Assembly (NCBI GenBank): GCA_951406725.2
Contig: OX597823.1
Location: forward strand, 38,274,001-38,336,000
Direction: 5' to 3'
Origin: Octopus vulgaris
Taxonomy: Eukaryota
Length of the DNA stretch: 62,000 nt
Made by a program: the position numbers and the translations under genes. The number at the start of each line of letters is the position of its first letter. Within the stretch, counting starts at the first letter, position 1. Shown here piece by piece: positions 2,569-59,597 of the stretch. The notes beneath the pieces were generated by a model, which searched no databases, was not told where the DNA came from, and saw only the letters and a list, made by a program, of their open reading frames with translations.

Positions 2569-3821
2569 CATCCCATAAATAATGCTGTTTTTTTTATACT
2601 TCTTTTATTTTTCAAAATTAAGATAAAGTTATATTTAAATCTAAAATATACTCTCCTTCATTTTCTACAATGCTCTTCCATCTATCTGGTAGACTTGCAA
2701 GGCCCCCTCTTCTGAAATTCACTTGTCCATGATGAAAAGAACTTCTCCAGTACTGTTCTGACCTAATCTACAGAATTCATATTTTTGTCATACAAACGAT
2801 TTTAAAGACTGCAGAATAAATGATAATCAAATAGGGCAATGTCCGGCGAATATGGTTGGTGGGGTATAGTTTCTCATTCAAACTGCTCCAGCCTTTGGAA
2901 TGTCATCCTTACTGTACATGGCCAAGCATTATCCTGATAGAAGAATGTCTTTTGTCTTGAAACCAAAGATGGTTGTTTTTCTTCTAGTGCTGACTTAAGC
3001 TGCTCAAGCTTCTCACAATAGATTTCCTTTTTTGTAGTTTGGTTTGTGTTTAAAAGTTCAAAATGGACTAAACCTTTCACATCCCACCAAACAGAAAACA
3101 ACACCTTAGCCTGGGATGCCAGAGTTTCTCTTTTCCTACCCACTGTCTTCGGTGCTTGACATTTTTATAGAGAACCCATTTCTCATCACCAGTCACTAAT
3201 CAGTCCAAAAAAGGTTAATTTGTGAGATGTGACAGCAAAGAAGAGCACACATTCACTCTCTGCATGTGATTAGATTTGGAAAATTTGTAAGGAACTCACC
3301 CAATTTGCTGACTTTTCTGATGGCATGCAGGTATCGATGACTAGTTGAATGACCAAATCCAAGCTTCTTTGCTAGTTCCTCAACTATTATGAGGGGATTT
3401 TGTTCCACTAGGGTTTGCAGGATGAGCTTGTCAAGCTCTACAGGTCTTCCAGGGTAAGGCTTGTTTTCTAGGCTGTAGTCTCCAGCTCGGAATTTCTGGA
3501 ACCACCATTGACATTGGCTTTCACTTATTGTCCAATCCCCATATACCGCATTAATATTCCTCACACTTTCCATTGCATGGTTGCCTTTATTGAACTCATA
3601 AAGCAAAATATACCGAATATGCTCCTTTACCACTTCTATCGTATCTTTGAAAAAATAACTGTTAAAATCGAACTGCACTCTTCAAAACTTGCACTAAGAA
3701 TGAACACAAAGTAAAATTACTACTTACTTTTATAGGAAGTTGATGCAGGTAGTTTATCCCGTCCCTCTCCAACTTTTAGTTCATGCAATTGAAAAAAATG
3801 CATTATTTATGTGATGACTCA

Positions 3822-14689: not shown

Positions 14690-16435
14690 ACCTATATAGC
14701 TAATCAGGCTGTCCATGAGGGAGTCATACCCAACGATGAGTGTAGCAGCATTATAATCAGCTGCTACTAAAGCAAAGGTGATGCTTTAGACAGAAATTAC
14801 TGCAGAGGCATCAAATTGCTGGACTAAGTGATGAAAGTTACAGAGAGGGTCATAGCTCAATTAATTAGGAAGAAAGTTGGCGTAGATGAGATGCAGTTTG
14901 GATTTTTGCCAGGTAGAAGCACAATTGATGTTATATTCGTGGTTAGGCAACTGCAGGAGAAGTATTTAGTCCAAAATAAAACTCTGTACTTGGCTTTTGT
15001 TGACATGGAGAAAGTCTTTCACAGGGTCCCCCCACTCCCTAACTGGTGGTCAGTGCAGAAGCTAGGGATAGATGAATGGTTGGTGAGGGCTGCACAAGTC
15101 ATGTACAGGAATGCTGCCAGTAAAGTGAAGGTTGGCAACAAGTATAGCAATGAATTCAGTGTACAGGTAGGAGTTCACCAAGGTTCAGTTCTCAGCTCCC
15201 TCTTATTTATTTTAGTTCTCCAGGCCTTAACAGAGGAATTCAATACTGACTGCCCTTGGAAGCTTCTCTATGCTGATAACCTTGTTCTTACAGGCGAATC
15301 ACCACCTTACCTAAAAAAGACTCCGCCGGTTACGACGACGAGGGTCCCAGCTGATACGATCAACGGAACAGCTTGCTCGTGAAATTAACGTGCAAATGGC
15401 TGAGCATTCCACAGACATGTGTACCCTTAACGTAGTTCTCGGGGATAATCAGCGTGACACAGAGAGTGACAAGGCTGACCCTTTGAAATACAAGTACAAC
15501 TCATTTTTGCCAGCTGAGTGGACTGGAGCAACGTGAAATAAAGTGTCTTGCTCAAGGACACAACGCGTCGCCGGGAATCGAACTCACAATCTTACGATCA
15601 TGAGCCGAATGCCCTAACCACTAAGCCACGCGCCCTCACTTCCACCTTACCTAGAGAAGAAATTTCAGGCATGGAAACATGGTCTGGAATCAAAGAGCGT
15701 CAGAGTTAATTCAGCAAAAACAAAAGCCCTAGTAAGTAGGAAAACAGACAAATCTCAAGTCCCTTCAGAGAGAAGGTGCTGTTTGATATGTAAAAACTCC
15801 TTACTTTGTACCCAGTGCTAGCTTTGGACACATAAGAGGTGTAGCAGTATCACAGGAAGGTTAATAGAGTAAATAGTCTTTGTGTGTGGCAGATGTGTGG
15901 GTACAATAAGCACAAATAATGTGCAGACAATAGACTCCCTCAAATGCTTAGGGTTATCATTAGAAGTAGTAGAAAGCCTATTTTACCTAGGTGATCAATT
16001 TAGCAGTGGAAGAGGTAGTTCTGAAAATGTAGTTGCTAGAATAAGAATGGGCTGGGCAAAGTTTAGAGAGGTTCTACCTTTGTTGGTAACTAAAGGCCTC
16101 TCCCTCAGAGTGAAAGGCAGATTGCATGATGCCTCTGTATGCACAGCCATGGGTTTTGACTCCAGAGGTGTTGTAAGGGCTTGAAAGAAATGAAGCTAGT
16201 ATGGGTAATGAAGCTGGATGGGTAATGTCTGTGTGTATGCATGATAGAGTGTAAATGATTTAAGAGGAAAACTGTGTACAAGAGCCATCAGATGTATGCA
16301 AGAGAGAAGACTGCACTGGTTTGGTCATGTGATGCATATGGATGTGGACAGCTGTGTAAAGAAGTGCTGAGCTCTAATTGTGGAGGGAATTTGTGGAAGT
16401 GGTAAACTAAGGAAGACATGGGATGAAGTCGTGAG
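14690..16435 (+). mobile_element. RTE LINE RT region, decayed and split by a SINE
   Basis: QFGFLPGRSTIDVIFVVRQLQEKY, GVHQGSVLSSLLF, LLYADNL, CGRC Zn-knuckle insertion, YLGD and GWAKFREVLPLL motifs. Confidence 0.93.
15314..15641 (-). mobile_element. Young tRNA-derived SINE (family B, CORE-like) with 12-bp TSD
   Basis: CpG-rich. Head gcgcgtggcttagtggttaggg...gagttcgattcccgg. TSD ccaccttaccta at 15302-15313 and 15642-15653. Confidence 0.92.
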
Positions 16436-16638
16436 AAATATATATATATATATATATTTATCAATATAGGGTAGCAAAAAAATTCAAGAAAAAATTCAAG
16501 AAAAATTTTCTGCAACCAGCGGTCAAGTGAGAAAATAGAAATAGTCACAAACTATATAATATATTCAACAAAATATTAAGGAAAGACCCTTACAGGTCGT
16601 TCGACTCACTTGAAAAGAGCAGTCGCCTTTTCTTTTGG

Positions 16639-16737
16639 GACTTTGCTGATGAAACAAACCAATCGTAAACGGATTTAATTTAATTTAATTAAGTTCGATT
16701 GCGTTAAAATTGTTGAAACCTTGCAGGGTACAAAGTT
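16639..16737 (+). ncRNA. Type I hammerhead ribozyme (copy 1)
   Basis: Helix I gactttg/caaagtt, core CTGATGA (16646-52), helix II aacaa/ttgtt with aatcg/cgatt extension, GAAA (16715-18), short quasi-palindromic helix III ccttgcaggg, GUA cleavage after 16730. Confidence 0.85.
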
Positions 16738-17130
16738 GGAAAAGGATAAATGTTTTTATTTCTCCTTTAGCTTTCAGAATTACTACTATTTTTGCGGTTT
16801 GAGTTTTGGCTGCTCTTTGCAAGTGAGTTGAACGACCTGTAAGGGTCTTTCCTTAATATTTTGTTGAATATATTATATAGTCTGTGACTATTTCTATTTT
16901 CTCACTTGACCGCTGGTTGCAGAAAATTTTTCTTGAATTTTTTCTTGAATTTTTTTGCTACCCTATATTGATAAATTAATAATTTTTGACTAATTCTGAA
17001 ATTGTATCAGCAGTTTATATTTGCTGCTGAGTAGTTGGCGCGGTTACGTTAGATTTCGAAAAATTAGGATATATATACTCGGGGCTTCAGTGGTATAGCC
17101 TCGTGTGTATATGTTCGCCTTTTCTTTTGG

Positions 17131-17229
17131 GACTTTGCTGATGAAACAAACCAATCGTAAACGGATTTAATTTAATTTAATTAAGTTCGATTGCGTAAAA
17201 ATTGTTGAAACTTTGCAGGGTACAAAGTT
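17131..17229 (+). ncRNA. Type I hammerhead ribozyme (copy 2)
   Basis: Same architecture. CTGATGA at 17138-44, GAAA at 17207-10, helix III ctttgcaggg, GUA cleavage after 17222. Confidence 0.85.
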
Positions 17230-17275
17230 GGAAAAGGATAAATGTTTTTATTTCTCCTTTAGCTTTCAGAATTAC

Positions 17276-17360
<85 letters not shown>

Positions 17361-17837
17361 TATACATACATTCACGCTCACACATACACACACATATACA
17401 TGACCAGTGCCCAGTTTCTATTTTTCTTCCTTTATCTCTTCCTTTCTTACACTGGTCCCTTAGCTGACCAGTCGCAAATTCTCTATCTCTCAGTTCTACA
17501 TCCTTCAAGACATTTTCTAAATGTTACTCACTATTCCCGTCATATTTTGTTTGACTGTTTGTCCTCATCCACCATTCTAAATCACACTCTGTGTTGTTTT
17601 GCTTGGTTTGTTTTGTTTTGTTTGATCTTGTCCATAATTCTCCACAAGAAAAAAATTTTTTGTGGGTGCCACCAATTGGGAAGCACTCAGTCTTATCATT
17701 AACGGAACGAAACAGATCAGTACCAATTGGTCAGTAACTGATGAAGAATTATTGACCTTCTGTTTGTCTTCTGTTCGTTTTTACATTCAGTATATGTTAC
17801 ATTGTTTGTTTATACATTTTTAATTTACACATATATA

Positions 17838-19007
17838 TATCAGGTCATCCCATAACTTCTGTCTGATTTTACCTTTTTAAAAATTGACTGAAATTTAATA
17901 GTATTTTAGAATGTCTAATGGAATTAAAAATTATTTTTATGCATTTGTATATATTTAAACTAATTAAATATTATTTTATACGATAATAGAATTAAAATTT
18001 CTTTGATTAAAACCCTTTCTAGTATGGAAGTATCCAAAGAGCATTTGAGGTACATAATGATTTATGAGTACAAAAAAGGAAACTCTGCAGCTGAAGCAAC
18101 TCAAAACATACACTCAGTTTATGGGAAAGAATGCTTGAATGAAAGAACTTGCAGAAGATGGTTTGCAAAATTCAGAAGTGGAGATTTCAGCTTTGAAGAT
18201 GAAGATCGAACAGGACATCCAGGAAGAAAATCCTGCATTATCAGTTGAAGAGTTGGCTTGCAACAACTTGAAAAGGTTCCTAAACTTGGAAAATGAATTG
18301 TCCGAAAGCAACTACAAATCCCGAATTGACATCTGCTCTTCTCTCCATTCTCGCGAACTCATTTTTGGATAGATTTGTGATTGGTGACAACAAATGGATC
18401 TTCTATCGAAATGTGAAACATCATAAACACTTGCTTGGTAAAAGGGAAAAAGCTCAACCACAACCGAGAAGGGAACTTCATGGAAAAAAGGTTCTTCTCT
18501 CTATCTGGTGGGATTGCAAAGGAGTAATTCACTTTGAATTGTTACCACCTAAAGCAACAATCAATGCTCAAGTCTACTGTCAGCAATTAGAGCATTTGAA
18601 CCAAGCTTTGAAGAAAAAAAGACCTGCTTTAGTGAATTGAAAAGAAGTAATGTTTCTTCAGGACAATGTGCAACCCCACACTGCAAAAATCACATCACAG
18701 AAGATCGAAAAGCTTATTTTCCCGACCTTGTTCCTTCAGACTGCCATTTGTTTCATAGTTTACAGAATCATTTGGGGTACATAACTTTCGAAAGCCAGGA
18801 GGAGGTTGATACTAACATTTCAGAGTTCTTCACTTTGAAAGCAAAAGAGTTTTACATTGATGGGATTAAAAAGCTTGTAAATAGATGAAAGGAAGTCATA
18901 GATAATCAGGGAAAGTACACTGATGATTAAATTTCAATTAAATATAACATTTGATCACTTGTTTTCTTTATTCGAAATTCGGACAGAACTTATGGGATGG
19001 CCTGATA
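17838..19007 (+). mobile_element. Mariner DNA transposon (family B), near full-length, frameshifted
   Basis: TIRs tatcaggtcatcccataa / ttatgggatggcctgata in TA. Motifs EHLRYIMIYEY, RRWFAKF, VIGDNKWIFY, LSIWWDCKGVIHFELL and PDLVPSDCHLF. Confidence 0.95.
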
Positions 19008-31596: not shown

Positions 31597-31926
31597 AAAC
31601 CATCTTCTGCAAGTTCTTTCATTCAAGCATTCTTTCCCATAAACTGAGTATATGTTTTGAGTCGCTTCAGCTGCAGAGTTTCCTTTTTTGTACTCATAAA
31701 GCATTATGTACCTCAAATGCTCTTTGGATACTTTCATGTTAGAAAGGGTTTTATTCAAAGACATTTTAATTCTATTATTCTGTAAAATAATATTTCATTA
31801 ATTTAAATGTACACAAATGCATAAAAATAATTTTTAATTCCATTAGACATTCTAAAATACTATTAAATTTCATTCAATTTTTAAAAAAGGTAAAATCAGA
31901 CAGAAGTTATGGGATGACCTGATATA
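31597..31926 (-). mobile_element. Mariner family B 5' fragment
   Basis: TIR ttatgggatgacctgata. Translates KEHLRYIMLYEYKKGNSAAEATQN...RRWF and is then cut by (TA)n. Confidence 0.92.
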
Positions 31927-32199
31927 TAGAGAGAGATACATTGGTGGCAAAATATAAAGTTATTATTTCTTGAAGCATATTATATTTTTTCTATTATAAT
32001 TTATAGAAAACTTTTTCTTTGGGACATAGATTCTGAAAGCCTAACTTGTTTCTCTCGAGGATGCAACGTTTCAGAGTTTTTCTGGGGTAAACTCATGTAC
32101 GTAACTACATACATTTGCATTTATATAGTAGAATATAGCCACACACATACTCATACATACACGTTTGTGTTTGCGTGTGTGTGTGTGTATGCACATATA

Positions 32200-32684: not shown

Positions 32685-33082
32685 TCATCATCATCATCAT
32701 CATCATCATCATCGTTTAACGTCCGTTTTCCGCGCTAGCACGGGTTGGACGGTTCGACCGGGGTCTGGGAAGCCAGAGGCTGCACCAGGCTCCAGTCTGA
32801 TCTGGCAGAGTTTCTACAGCTGGATGCCCTTCCAAACGCCAACCACTCCATGAGTGTAGTGGGTGCTTTTTACGTGCCACCTGCACAGGTGCCAGGGGGG
32901 TCCGGCATCGGCCACAATCGGTTGGAACTTTTAACGTGCTACCGGCACGGAAGCCAGCCAAGGCGGTGCTGGCAACGGCCACGTTTGGATGGTGCTTTTT
33001 ATGTGCCACCAGCACAGAAGCCAGTCGGGGCGGTGCTGGCATCGGCCACATTCGGATGGTGCTTTTTATGTGCTACCGGCAC
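32685..33082 (-). mobile_element. Young RTE 3' end with internal tandem repeats
   Basis: (CAT)n then cgtttaacgtccgttttcc...; repeated ggtgctttt(t)a(c/t)gtgccacc; CpGs intact. Reverse complement of 59398-59597. Confidence 0.88.
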
Positions 33083-55287: not shown

Positions 55288-56319
55288 TTCTAATTTACTA
55301 TTCCAAGAATCCTTTCTCAGTGTAGTTATTGTTGTTAACTCTACTGATTTGTTATTATTTTTCATTTATGATACATTTCAAATTTTTATTTGATCAATTT
55401 TAGTTTCAGTTGAATTTTACAAACATATTTTATGACATAGATCTAAATATATACTAAATATTTTTCATATTAATATATAAATATTTGGTATATAAATATA
55501 CTAAATATTATTAATATTTATTTCTAACAAGGACACACATTTTTAGTGGGGGTATTGTCAATTAGATTGATCAAAGTACTTGATAGGCATTTTATTTTGT
55601 TGATGTTACAATGATGAAAAGCAAAGTCAACCACAATGGGATTTCAACTCAAAATATAAAGAGTGAAAATATAAATGCCATGAAACATTTTGACTGATGC
55701 TCAACTCAGAATGCAATGTTGGCAGTAAGTGTCCTGAAACAAGTTCAAATTTTTCTGGGTTGGTAAAATAATAAATAATTTTAATTCAATCATTTGTGAG
55801 CCTACAGAAATTGGCCCTGTACTATGCAAAAAATCTATTATTGCTTATCAATTCAAATTCTGTGGAGTTGACTTTTCATTTTTCTAGGATGTATTAATGT
55901 ATTGCCTCTAACAGATATGAGTCAAAAATACTCTTTTTTTTTAAATAAATCAACTTAATGTCTAGTCAAAACAAATCAAATCTTTTATCTATTACTTGTT
56001 GCAATCACTGGACTGTGACCATGCAGGAACAATTCCTTGAGGGATTGCAGTTGAAAAATTGACCCCAATACTAAATTTCTCTTTTATTCAACCACTAAGT
56101 TATGGGAACATAAACAAATCTATAGTACTGTGGGTGAATTACAAATAGAAACATAAAAATACAAAGATACATGAATAGACAGACATCCATTGAACCACAC
56201 ACACAAACAGATATATATATATATATATATATACATGCACACACACACATACATACAAAAACACATATATTGCTATATATATATATATATAAATATGTAC
56301 ATACATAGCAATATATATA

Positions 56320-57291
56320 TTTCAGATGTCGGGGCAGAAATCTGCTCCAGCATCTCATCAGTTGTTAAGACAAAACAAAAATGCTATGAAAATGACTGTT
56401 AAAAAAGGAGAAATTACTATGAAGTTGACTGTTATTAAGACAATGGACAAGACTTTTCCTGATGTATATTTTGCCATTTACAAAGATGATGCCCTAGCTT
56501 TAACCACAAATGCCAATGGACCAGCACAAAATCGGTTTAGGAAGGACATTATCCAGACCATGAAAACTTTCGGTCTTAGTATAACTACAGATACCAACCT
56601 GACGGTTGTCAATTTCCTAGATTTATCCTTAGATTTAAATAAGAATATTTACAAACCTTATAGGAAACCCAATGATAGACTTAGTTATATTAATGTAGGT
56701 TCCTGCCATCCCCCCATAGTGTTTATAAATTTAGTTAAAAACATTAGCAAAAGAATTTCTAGCCTTTCCTCTGATAGGGACATTTTTTATAGTGTTGCCC
56801 CAGTATATAATAATGCTCTAAAAGATAATGGATTTAGTGAGGACATAACCTATACACCCATTACCAGTACAATAATAAAGAAAAGGAAACATAGGAATAG
56901 GAAAACTATCTGGTTCACACCCTCTTACTCCTCTGAAGTGACCTTTAATATAGGTAAATACTTCTTATCACTTATAGATAGGCATTTTCCAATCAGTCAT
57001 AATTACAGAAAGCTCTTCAATATACATAACTTAAAAATCAGTTTTAGCTCAACTACTAATTTAAAAACTATAATCGCACACAATGCACAAAAACAACAAA
57101 ATGAAACCAGCTGTTCATGCAGGGATAAAAATATGCGCCCACTAAATGGAGCTTGCATGCCTGAGACCATCTTTTATGAAGCCACTGTAGACTCTACAAC
57201 AACTAAGGACACAGTGGGTCTCACAGAGGGGTATTTTAAAGCCAGGTTCAACGATCACAAGATTTACTATAAGCAGTATCATGAGGTTTAG
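56320..57291 (+). mobile_element. Penelope-like element remnant (5'-truncated RT palm/thumb and start of GIY-YIG), preceded by an inverted segment
   Basis: From about 56460: IYKDDAL (YRDD-type), VNFLDLSLDL, YKPYRKPND, HPP, IWFTPSYS..NIGKYFL.LIDRHFP, CSCR...PLNGAC, IFYEATV..VGLTEGYFKARFNDH. The N-terminal part of the track ORF is not homologous. Confidence 0.9.
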
Positions 57292-57294
57292 TAG

Positions 57295-58312
57295 TTTCTG
57301 CTACCTAGGTGACCAAGTTAGTAGTTGGGGTGGATGCTCAGAGAGTGTTACCACTAGAATAAGAATAGCCTGAGCAAAGTTTAGAAAGCTTCTTCCCCTA
57401 CTGGCGACAAAGAGTCTCTTGCTCAGAGTGAAAGGAAGATTGTACGATACTTGTGTGTGAACTGCTATGCTTCATGGCAGTGAAACATGGGCCATAACTG
57501 CGGAGGACATGTGTAGGCTTGAAAGAAATGAAGCTAGCATGATCCGCTGGATGTGTAATGTCAGTATGCATGCATGACAGAGTGGAAGCACCCTGAGAGA
57601 AATGTTGGACATAAGAAGCATTGGCTGTGGCATGCAGGAGAGACGTTTGTATTGGTATGGTCATGTACTATGGATGGATGAGGAGAGATGTGTGAAGAAG
57701 TGCCACTCCCAAACTGTTGAAGGAATCCGGGGTAGAGATAGACCCAGGAAGACATGGGATGAGGTGGTCAAGCATGACCTTTAAACGTTGGGCCTCACAG
57801 AAGCTATGACGAAAGACCGAGACCTCTGGAGATATGCTGTGACTGTGAAGACCTGACAAATGCAGTGAGTCCATGGCTCACAGGACGGCGTGCTGTGCTA
57901 ACCTTAGATCGTAGGGTGACCTATTGTGCTTGAGGAGACCTATTGAGTCAAGTACATCAACATCAAAATAAAAATCAAATGGAAATTGTAGTTGTGATAC
58001 TCATGCCGGTGGCACGTAAAAAGCACCATCTGAATGTGGCCAATGCCAGCGCCGCTTTGACTGGCGTCCGTGCTGGTGACATGTAAATAGCACCAACCGA
58101 TCATGGCCGTTTGCCAGCCTCCTCTGTCCCCTGTGCTGGTGGCAAGTAAAAAGTACCCACTACACTCACAGAGTGGTTGGCATTAGGAAGAGCATCCGGC
58201 TTTAGAAACACTGCCAGATCAGACTGGTGCAGCCTCTTGGCTTCCCAGACTCCGGTCAAACCGTCCAACCCATGCTAGCATAGAAAACAGATGTTAAACC
58301 ATGATGATGATA
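57295..58312 (+). mobile_element. RTE LINE 3' portion with 3' UTR
   Basis: YLGD, LYDTCV, MLHGSETW, RRLYWYGHVLWM, RGRDRPRKTWDEVVK; ends in (GAT)n. Confidence 0.92.
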
Positions 58313-58340
58313 TATATATATATACACATATACACACAGC

Positions 58341-59397: not shown

Positions 59398-59400
<3 letters not shown>

Positions 59401-59597
59401 GTGCAGGTGGCACGTAAAAAGCACCCACTACACTCACGGAGTGGTTGGCGTTAAGGAAGGGCATCCAGCTGTAGAAACGTTGCCAGATAAGACCGGAGCC
59501 TGGTGCAGTCTTCTGGCTTCCCAGATCCCCGGTCGAACCGTCCAACCCATGCTAGCATGGAGAACGGACGTTAAACGATGATGATGATGATGATGAT
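59398..59597 (+). mobile_element. Young RTE 3' end (5'-truncated)
   Basis: CpG-intact match to the reverse complement of 32685-32890; ends in (GAT)n. Confidence 0.9.

Follow-up and report, generated by a model that had tools for sequence, protein, structure and literature searches.

Layout of the composite insertion

The 62-kb stretch of the Octopus vulgaris genome analysed here (assembly GCA_951406725.2, contig OX597823.1, forward-strand positions 38,274,001 to 38,336,000; hereafter the window, in whose own coordinates all positions are given) carries, at 16451–17281, a single composite insertion which we consider as a candidate retrozyme, i.e. a short non-coding retroelement bearing hammerhead ribozyme motifs. 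The insertion lies between (TA)12 and (TA)36 and is made up of an inverted 172-nt fragment, followed by 1.34 forward copies of a 492-nt unit. That the element is embedded in (TA)n had been proposed in the original prediction, which was drawn from the sequence without database searches, and Tandem Repeats Finder (TRF) confirms this setting, with (AT)12 to the left and (TA)36 to the right.

Read from left to right, the region 16438–17350 begins with the (AT)12 microsatellite (16438–16461; TRF, sequence), presumed to be the target, which merges with the outer end of the inverted fragment. This fragment (16451–16622, minus strand; repeat search, alignment) is a partial copy of the interior of the unit, equivalent to 16810–16981, and its outer end lies in (TA)n. 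There follow direct repeat 1 (16623–16789, plus strand; repeat search), a partial upstream copy which resembles the pseudo-long terminal repeat (pLTR) of Penelope-like elements (PLEs) and contains the first hammerhead motif; a 20-nt spacer; the forward counterpart of the inverted segment (16810–16981, plus strand; repeat search, TRF), in which a 12-nt mini-repeat occurs 2.4 times at 16927–16955; a 133-nt single-copy part of the unit (16982–17114, plus strand); and direct repeat 2 (17115–17281, plus strand; repeat search, descriptor scan), which holds the second hammerhead motif, with core position C3 at 17138 and predicted cleavage after 17222. The (TA)36 microsatellite (17279–17350; TRF) closes the region, and CA-rich repeats continue from there to ~17400.

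The two direct repeats are 167 nt long, spaced by 492 nt and 99% identical, differing at just two positions (16705 T/A and 16720 C/T; 1.2% divergence). The inverted repeat, ~16451–16622 against 16810–16981, aligns over 172 nt with 97% complementarity and three internal substitutions, a divergence of ~1.8%; the inverted copy had been foreseen with a length of 167 bp, and whilst its presence holds, its length is really ~169–172 nt. The inverted arm ends at 16622 and direct repeat 1 begins at 16623, an exact abutment with zero overlap. The similar divergence of both pairs of copies fits a single event with modest decay afterwards. As a separate observation, the two arms of the inverted repeat, if transcribed from upstream of 16451, would form a near-perfect double-stranded RNA hairpin of ~170 bp, with the first ribozyme in its 187-nt loop; such a structure could be a substrate for RNA editing or small-RNA production.

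The predicted monomer RNA, delimited by both predicted cleavage sites, spans 16731–17222 on the plus strand (fold, open reading frame (ORF) check, GC content) and has a GC content of 32.7%. Neither strand of the unit contains a stop-free frame longer than 55 codons, even when read in tandem, which confirms the earlier statement that the unit has no meaningful ORF. When the translation of the unit's longest stop-free frame (55 aa) was used to look for homologous peptides, nothing was returned, and an exact look-up of a 45-aa ORF inside the element was equally negative. The monomer folds with a minimum free energy (MFE) of -135.4 kcal/mol (z = -6.3 versus shuffles), and the MFE structure contains hairpins at 17007–17030 and 17071–17112 in the single-copy part, both of which had been picked out beforehand. 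On the minus strand of the unit, neither Rfam nor a descriptor scan found a ribozyme. A tRNA-like or SINE (short interspersed element) origin was also considered, and is unsupported: ARAGORN detected no tRNA at all.

Two hammerhead motifs and their support

Read from the sequence, the conserved core of a type I hammerhead is present at all 13 positions in both copies. In the first motif (16626–16745 including its helix I extension, plus strand; sequence, descriptor scan, null model, folds), helix I pairs G16639–G16645 with C16731–U16737 over 7 bp, including one G-U; the C3–A9 box CUGAUGA occupies 16646–16652; the base of helix II pairs AACAA (16653–16657) with UUGUU (16710–16714) over 5 bp; G12, A13 and A14 are found at 16715–16717; and helix III pairs ACCU (16718–16721) with GGGU (16726–16729) over 4 bp, closing a UGCA loop. 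The A15.1–U16.1 pair is A16718–U16729, H17 is A16730 and C1.1 is 16731, with cleavage predicted between 16730 and 16731. Beyond a 5-nt bulge, helix I is extended by 7–8 further pairs between ccttttc (16626–16632) and gaaaagg (16739–16745). As befits type I, helix I is the open one of the three, II and III being closed. The second motif repeats the same parts at +492, and differs only by C15.3 to U, which turns a C-G into a U-G pair in helix III, and by one loop base; both differences are structure-neutral, although they number only two, over two copies. The original prediction fares well here, as two near-identical type I motifs with intact core boxes, 492 nt apart, are borne out by the sequence and the descriptor scan, the 7-bp helix I and its ccttttc/gaaaagg extension are both present, and the cleavage positions it gave, after 16730 and 17222, agree with our reading of the core.

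For the descriptor scan we used a pattern of our own (CUGANGA, helix II, GAA, a helix III with A15.1–U16.1, an H17 other than G, and helix I), applied to the 62 kb in both orientations. It matched these two motifs only, even when relaxed to 4/3/2 bp, whereas 400 windows simulated under a first-order Markov null model gave no match at 5/4/3 bp or more, and 0.0475 matches per window at 4/3/2 bp. A minimal hammerhead (min-HHR) descriptor, in which helix III is absent and a U3-A8 variant is allowed, had zero matches in the window, including the surroundings of a PLE-like ORF described below. Features beyond the descriptor add weight to the hammerhead call, namely the helix I extension, the helix II stem, the loop offset and the palindromic helix III. 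Indeed, the bulge of helix I lies 7 bp from the core and the 6x6 internal loop of helix II 5 bp from it; in canonical metazoan type I motifs these distances are 6 and 4 bp (PMC4209133), and the 2-bp offset between the loops is thus kept here (7/5 versus 6/4).

Helix II itself is unusual. There are 62 nt between its core strands, and folding yields one interrupted hairpin with a 16-bp interrupted stem, long yet unbranched, so that the branched helix II of the original prediction is not upheld. Its tip consists of an (ATTTA)3.6 mini-repeat (16673–16690 and 17165–17182; TRF), which suggests that the length of the helix stems from slippage rather than from function. Helix III, on the other hand, is short and quasi-palindromic, just as had been described: as a hairpin it is worth only -1.7 kcal/mol in copy 1 and 0.0 in copy 2, against -13.3 to -18.9 kcal/mol as a 12-bp palindromic intermolecular duplex. 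The weakness of the hairpin next to the strength of the duplex supports the idea that two ribozymes of one transcript pair as a dimer; the ribozymes of PLEs and of amphibian retrozymes also act as dimers, and the palindromic helix III found here matches theirs.

Several observations nevertheless weigh against a functional ribozyme, and thus against reading the locus as a retrozyme. The G10.1–C11.1 pair at the base of helix II is highly conserved (PMC4209133), whereas in both copies this pair is A-U (A16653–U16714 in the first). None of the Rfam hammerhead models (Hammerhead_1/3/II/HH9/HH10) matched anywhere in the window at gathering score, and none appeared at E<=10 on 16300–17500; the check by covariance models that accompanied the original prediction therefore came out negative. 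Hammerheads do not absolutely require G10.1–C11.1, conserved though it is, and the Rfam miss is likely due to the helix II insertion of ~50 nt together with the A-U pair at 10.1–11.1. The 122-nt hammerhead region is more stable than expected (z = -4.1); however, when constrained to the hammerhead it folds at -32.9 (copy 1) and -30.1 kcal/mol (copy 2) versus an MFE of -36.1, i.e. 3.2 and 6.0 kcal/mol above the respective minimum. In the MFE structure of the 122–124-nt region, ACUUUGC (the 5' strand of helix I plus C3) pairs with GCAGGGU (the 3' strand of helix III), which destroys helices I and III and retains helix II. As nearest-neighbour energies omit the tertiary contacts of the core, we take this competing fold as a caution and not as a refutation. 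Finally, extrapolating from the null model with a pairing probability of ~0.39 per extra base pair, taken from composition, ~6e-5 chance motifs of 7/5/4 quality are expected per window, which amounts to a few across a ~2.7-Gb genome; on a genome-wide scale, the bare motif is by itself indecisive.

The only sub-threshold matches in the Rfam search were of snoRNA and miRNA models to AT-rich stretches or microsatellites, which we dismissed as artefacts; those to mir-297, RUF21 and mir-1277, at 17278–17401, reflect the composition of the TA/CA microsatellite.

Could the resemblance to a hammerhead then be fortuitous, the locus being a fold-back repeat akin to a miniature inverted-repeat transposable element (MITE), with 172-bp arms and a TA target, that forms an AT-rich hairpin and no ribozyme? 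The Rfam result, the A-U pair at 10.1–11.1, the mini-repeat at the tip of helix II, the competing MFE structure and the few motifs of such quality expected per genome by extrapolation would all be in keeping with this. Yet chance would have to supply 13 of 13 core positions, helices of 7/5/4 bp, a helix I extension of 7–8 bp, a loop offset of the canonical type and a 12-nt palindromic helix III of the kind typical of PLE and retrozyme ribozymes, and we find a fortuitous motif very improbable. A MITE or fold-back element as such was rejected, since it leaves unexplained why direct repeat 2 falls beyond the arms and why direct repeat 1 begins precisely where one of them ends.

Origin of the insertion

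PLE insertions are 5'-truncated and form partial tandems, in which the partial upstream copy is the pLTR; an inverted truncated copy often lies directly beside this upstream pLTR, and in canonical PLEs the pLTR is also where the hammerhead is located (PMC8557442). Microsatellites are preferred as insertion sites: (TA)n has been noted in the case of Naiads, and for Neptune a zinc-finger linker has been suggested (PMC8557442). The octopus locus displays this signature in its partial tandem, which takes the place of a pLTR, in its adjacent inverted copy and in its microsatellite target, and the PLE-like layout put forward in the original prediction thus matches published insertions. Within the 325-nt interior, however, the ORF of an autonomous PLE, encoding a reverse transcriptase (RT) and a GIY-YIG domain, was not found. 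A PLE signature around a non-coding interior, in place of an RT/endonuclease (EN) ORF, describes a non-autonomous derivative by definition. We favour, with a confidence a little better than even, the reading that the locus arose in a single retrotransposition event from a short, hammerhead-bearing retroelement without coding capacity, in other words from a PLE-mobilised animal retrozyme. This kind of element is already known; what the locus provides is a new example in octopus, with variant features and no new mechanism.

The same architecture would, of course, be left by an autonomous coding PLE of which only a remnant survives. In this case, the 167-nt repeats would be the pLTRs and the 325 nt would have survived an internal deletion that removed the RT/EN ORF, without any independent non-coding family. 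That canonical PLEs typically carry hammerheads inside their pLTRs is consistent with such an origin, as is the presence of a PLE-like ORF fragment elsewhere in the window. However, the lack of any stop-free frame above 55 codons extends to the interior, which by blastn resembles neither that PLE-like fragment (56326–57291) nor anything else in the window. Moreover, the repeats have diverged little and to a similar extent (1–2%), which argues that the short form was itself inserted, and is not an old element that has decayed; and the template was already devoid of the ORF if the inverted fragment stems from that event too. We therefore judge a PLE remnant to be unlikely.

How might a PLE-mobilised retrozyme have produced this arrangement? 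The forward part alone measures 659 nt, which exceeds one unit and points to a multimer or a circle as the template; the latter would have been an RNA longer than one unit, either multimeric or circular. If the forward and inverted parts were both copied from a single RNA, ~964 nt (1.96 units) would be needed, with the 133-nt segment 16982–17114 skipped. A PLE-type RT/GIY-YIG enzyme supplied in trans would cut the (TA)n target and prime cDNA on both DNA strands, at A/U-rich internal sites of the RNA, as the junctions ...GATAAAT/TA and ...ACTACTAT/AT would suggest (slashes mark the junctions). We envisage a form of twin priming, a process known for L1, whereby the two 3' ends of the cut (TA)n would pair, through microhomology, with separate internal sites of a single RNA, and the resulting forward and inverted copies would be joined at 16622/16623. 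Purified PLE enzyme does cleave and extend both DNA strands, and initiates reverse transcription internally on RNA; ribozyme cleavage is dispensable for PLE insertion in vitro (PMC11167929). As for the template, it could be a circular RNA copied by rolling-circle reverse transcription, as in the retrozyme model, or an uncleaved multimeric transcript, or else the enzyme could jump between monomers. In a read-through transcript, cleavage after A16730 and after A17222 would set free the 492-nt RNA, with the two ribozymes probably pairing through the 12-bp palindromic helix III, and a host tRNA ligase could then circularise this RNA. Ligation by tRNA ligase is the published circularisation route for retrozymes (PMC7229834).

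It is tempting to go one step further, and to see in the locus the recent insertion of an active, undescribed family of cephalopod retrozymes, whose composite structure records reverse transcription by a PLE enzyme of a circular, rolling-circle RNA; this is possible, albeit doubtful. Equally tentative is the proposal that the hammerhead of this family, with its helix II of ~60 nt and its A10.1–U11.1 pair, escapes both Rfam and standard descriptors. If true, the locus would offer direct structural evidence, in an invertebrate, that the PLE machinery mobilises retrozymes.

The flanks of the insertion bring in another scenario. To the left lies a fragment of a long interspersed element (LINE) with an RVT_1 domain (14828–16437, plus strand; Pfam, blastn within the window), which ends at (TA)n, ~540 bp before the 3' end of a second copy at 57292–58310 (plus strand). 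The absence of the LINE tail to the right of the element means that neither a clean empty site nor a target-site duplication can be reconstructed; either the insertion was accompanied by a deletion, or it landed in an already truncated LINE. A truncated flank with no matching continuation, and junctions at A/T-rich microhomologies, would also be compatible with a local rearrangement at the DNA level, in which a single-copy hammerhead repeat was partly duplicated and inverted by slippage or template switching at (TA)n, requiring neither a template longer than one unit nor a PLE enzyme. Long (TA)n tracts are, after all, prone to breakage and fold-back repair. We nonetheless hold such a rearrangement to be decidedly unlikely: a microsatellite and a partial tandem with an inverted copy beside it together make up a specific signature of PLE insertion, not one nucleotide separates the end of the inverted repeat from the start of the direct repeat, and both outer ends stop at the microsatellite.

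The retrozyme reading has its own difficulties to face with regard to this architecture. In unit coordinates, the inverted fragment ends on its outer side at 16981 and the forward copy at 16789, a difference of ~192 nt. Because of this difference, the inverted piece is not strictly what the PLE literature describes as a 5'-truncated inverted copy; it is an internal fragment that does not share the 3' end of the forward copy. No target-site duplication is readable at the insertion, and blastn within the window did not find the missing LINE tail to its right. The 492-nt unit exceeds the published range of 150–450 bp, and is present in 1.34 copies instead of an array. Lastly, our evidence comes from a single locus, and blastn with a word size of 7 found no second copy within the 62-kb window.

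We also looked for the element beyond the window. Scanning metagenome contigs for CTGATGAAACAA-N40-70-TTGTTGAAAC recovered 26 loci, none of which resembles the element; one of them fits the relaxed descriptor, and was set aside as a chance match after pre-selection on the pattern. Two further loci were sampled via homologues of the LINE RT. In a 20.9-kb Octopus vulgaris locus, neither a hammerhead nor a copy of the element is present, and a locus from ENA (European Nucleotide Archive) has nothing in common with the window, from which we conclude that it is not octopod.

Genomic surroundings and relation to known elements

The rest of the window is rich in repeats of other kinds. Among named homologues of the LINE RT, the best match comes from Octopus vulgaris (72% identity), and the 20.9-kb O. 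vulgaris locus mentioned above shares many SINE and LINE families with the window at 75–90% identity. Among these is a SINE-like repeat with copies at 58008–58315, 59399–59591 and 32699–33082, ending in ...CCAACCCATGCTAGCAT...GTTAAAC(GATGAT)n, which is 80–89% identical to copies at that chromosomal locus. This sharing of repeats agrees with an octopod origin of the window. The PLE-like ORF (56326–57291, plus strand) encodes 321 aa and is, judging from its sequence, probably a fragment of a truncated PLE. It has no Pfam match of its own; its homologues (42–47% identity, E down to 1e-68) carry PF26215, those from sea cucumber being named helix-turn-helix or reverse-transcriptase domain proteins, and its C-terminus contains a CxC...GLTEGYFKARFNDHK stretch that looks GIY-YIG-like by eye. 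An exact-product look-up of this ORF found nothing. It is preceded by a TA/CA microsatellite (56135–56325) and followed by a LINE fragment, with no hammerhead or minimal hammerhead adjoining. Elsewhere, an ORF at 3253–3678 (minus strand) contains the HTH_48 domain of Mos1-type (mariner) transposases, and 1940–2615 is a long, low-complexity tract of GTT/ACC-type trinucleotides that yields ORFs of poly-V, poly-T and poly-S in every frame. Just downstream of the element, 17834–18164 is repeated in inverted orientation at 31597–31928 (332 bp, 95% identical); this is an unrelated interspersed repeat.

Neither hammerheads nor PLEs are foreign to cephalopods: for the giant squid, a genome study reported 235 loci of Rfam Hammerhead_1 (PMC6962438), and the annotation of Octopus vulgaris includes PLEs (PMC13282606). 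The original prediction, whose author was not aware of this family in cephalopods, is therefore right in so far as our literature search found no description of retrozymes in the clade, and needs amending as regards squid hammerhead loci and octopus PLEs, both already reported. As far as the searchable literature shows, an explicit description of a retrozyme is new for the host clade. Considering that hammerhead repeats and their link to PLEs are firmly documented across many animals, a bivalve mollusc among them, an example in octopus is to be expected and is not surprising. What sets this one apart is a set of variant features, namely a long helix II, A-U at 10.1–11.1, a 492-nt unit and no detection by Rfam. 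A ribozyme variant that is invisible to all Rfam hammerhead models implies that Rfam-based counts, such as the 235 loci of the giant squid, may miss whole families. Furthermore, an ORF-less unit that displays the full PLE signature and implies a template longer than one unit amounts to a single-locus argument for retrozymes as non-autonomous derivatives of PLEs, and the locus offers a construct for testing dimer-dependent cleavage.

How, then, does the octopus element compare with those already described? With the hammerheads of PLE pLTRs (Cervera & de la Pena 2014, PMC4209133; Craig et al. 2021, PMC8557442; Frangieh et al. 2024, PMC11167929), it shares a ribozyme in a terminal direct repeat, a short palindromic helix III and the layout of the insertion. 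PLEs differ in having an RT/GIY-YIG ORF between the repeats, where there is none here, and the inverted piece of the octopus locus comes from the interior of the unit, its outer end being a different one.

Also comparable are the metazoan non-LTR retrozymes, in which a type I hammerhead is found in head-to-tail repeats of 150–450 bp, from dimers to multimers (PMC7229834); the repeats measure 350–390 bp in Mytilus galloprovincialis, 220–240 bp in Acropora and 330/350 bp in axolotl (Cervera & de la Pena 2020, PMC7229834). The features in common are a type I hammerhead motif per repeat, a head-to-tail arrangement, here of just 1.34 units, the lack of an ORF, a monomer predicted to be highly self-paired and a host with PLEs. 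The GC content of 33% also fits, that of the known elements being below 45–50%, as does the lack of a tRNA-like part. In contrast, their helix II consists of ~4–6 bp plus a loop, as opposed to 62 nt and an A-U pair at 10.1–11.1 in octopus, and their units of 150–450 nt compare with 492 nt, 1.34 copies and an extra inverted fragment. Vertebrate retrozymes have recently been argued to derive from PLE pLTRs and to depend on the PLE machinery (Li, Clavereau & Pollet 2026, bioRxiv 10.64898/2026.07.22.740005); the relationship proposed there is the one proposed here, but that work concerns vertebrates only and the phylogeny of pLTRs versus retrozymes, whereas ours concerns the insertion architecture of one invertebrate locus.

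The resemblance extends in part to the LTR retrozymes of plants (Cervera et al. 2016, PMC4918200), which are likewise non-autonomous, with two hammerheads in direct repeats around a non-coding core, and with the predicted release of a monomer that can be circularised, as here. Only the plant elements, however, possess type III hammerheads, true LTRs of ~350 bp, a primer-binding site and polypurine tract (PBS/PPT), a GC content above 55% and mobilisation of the Ty3 type.

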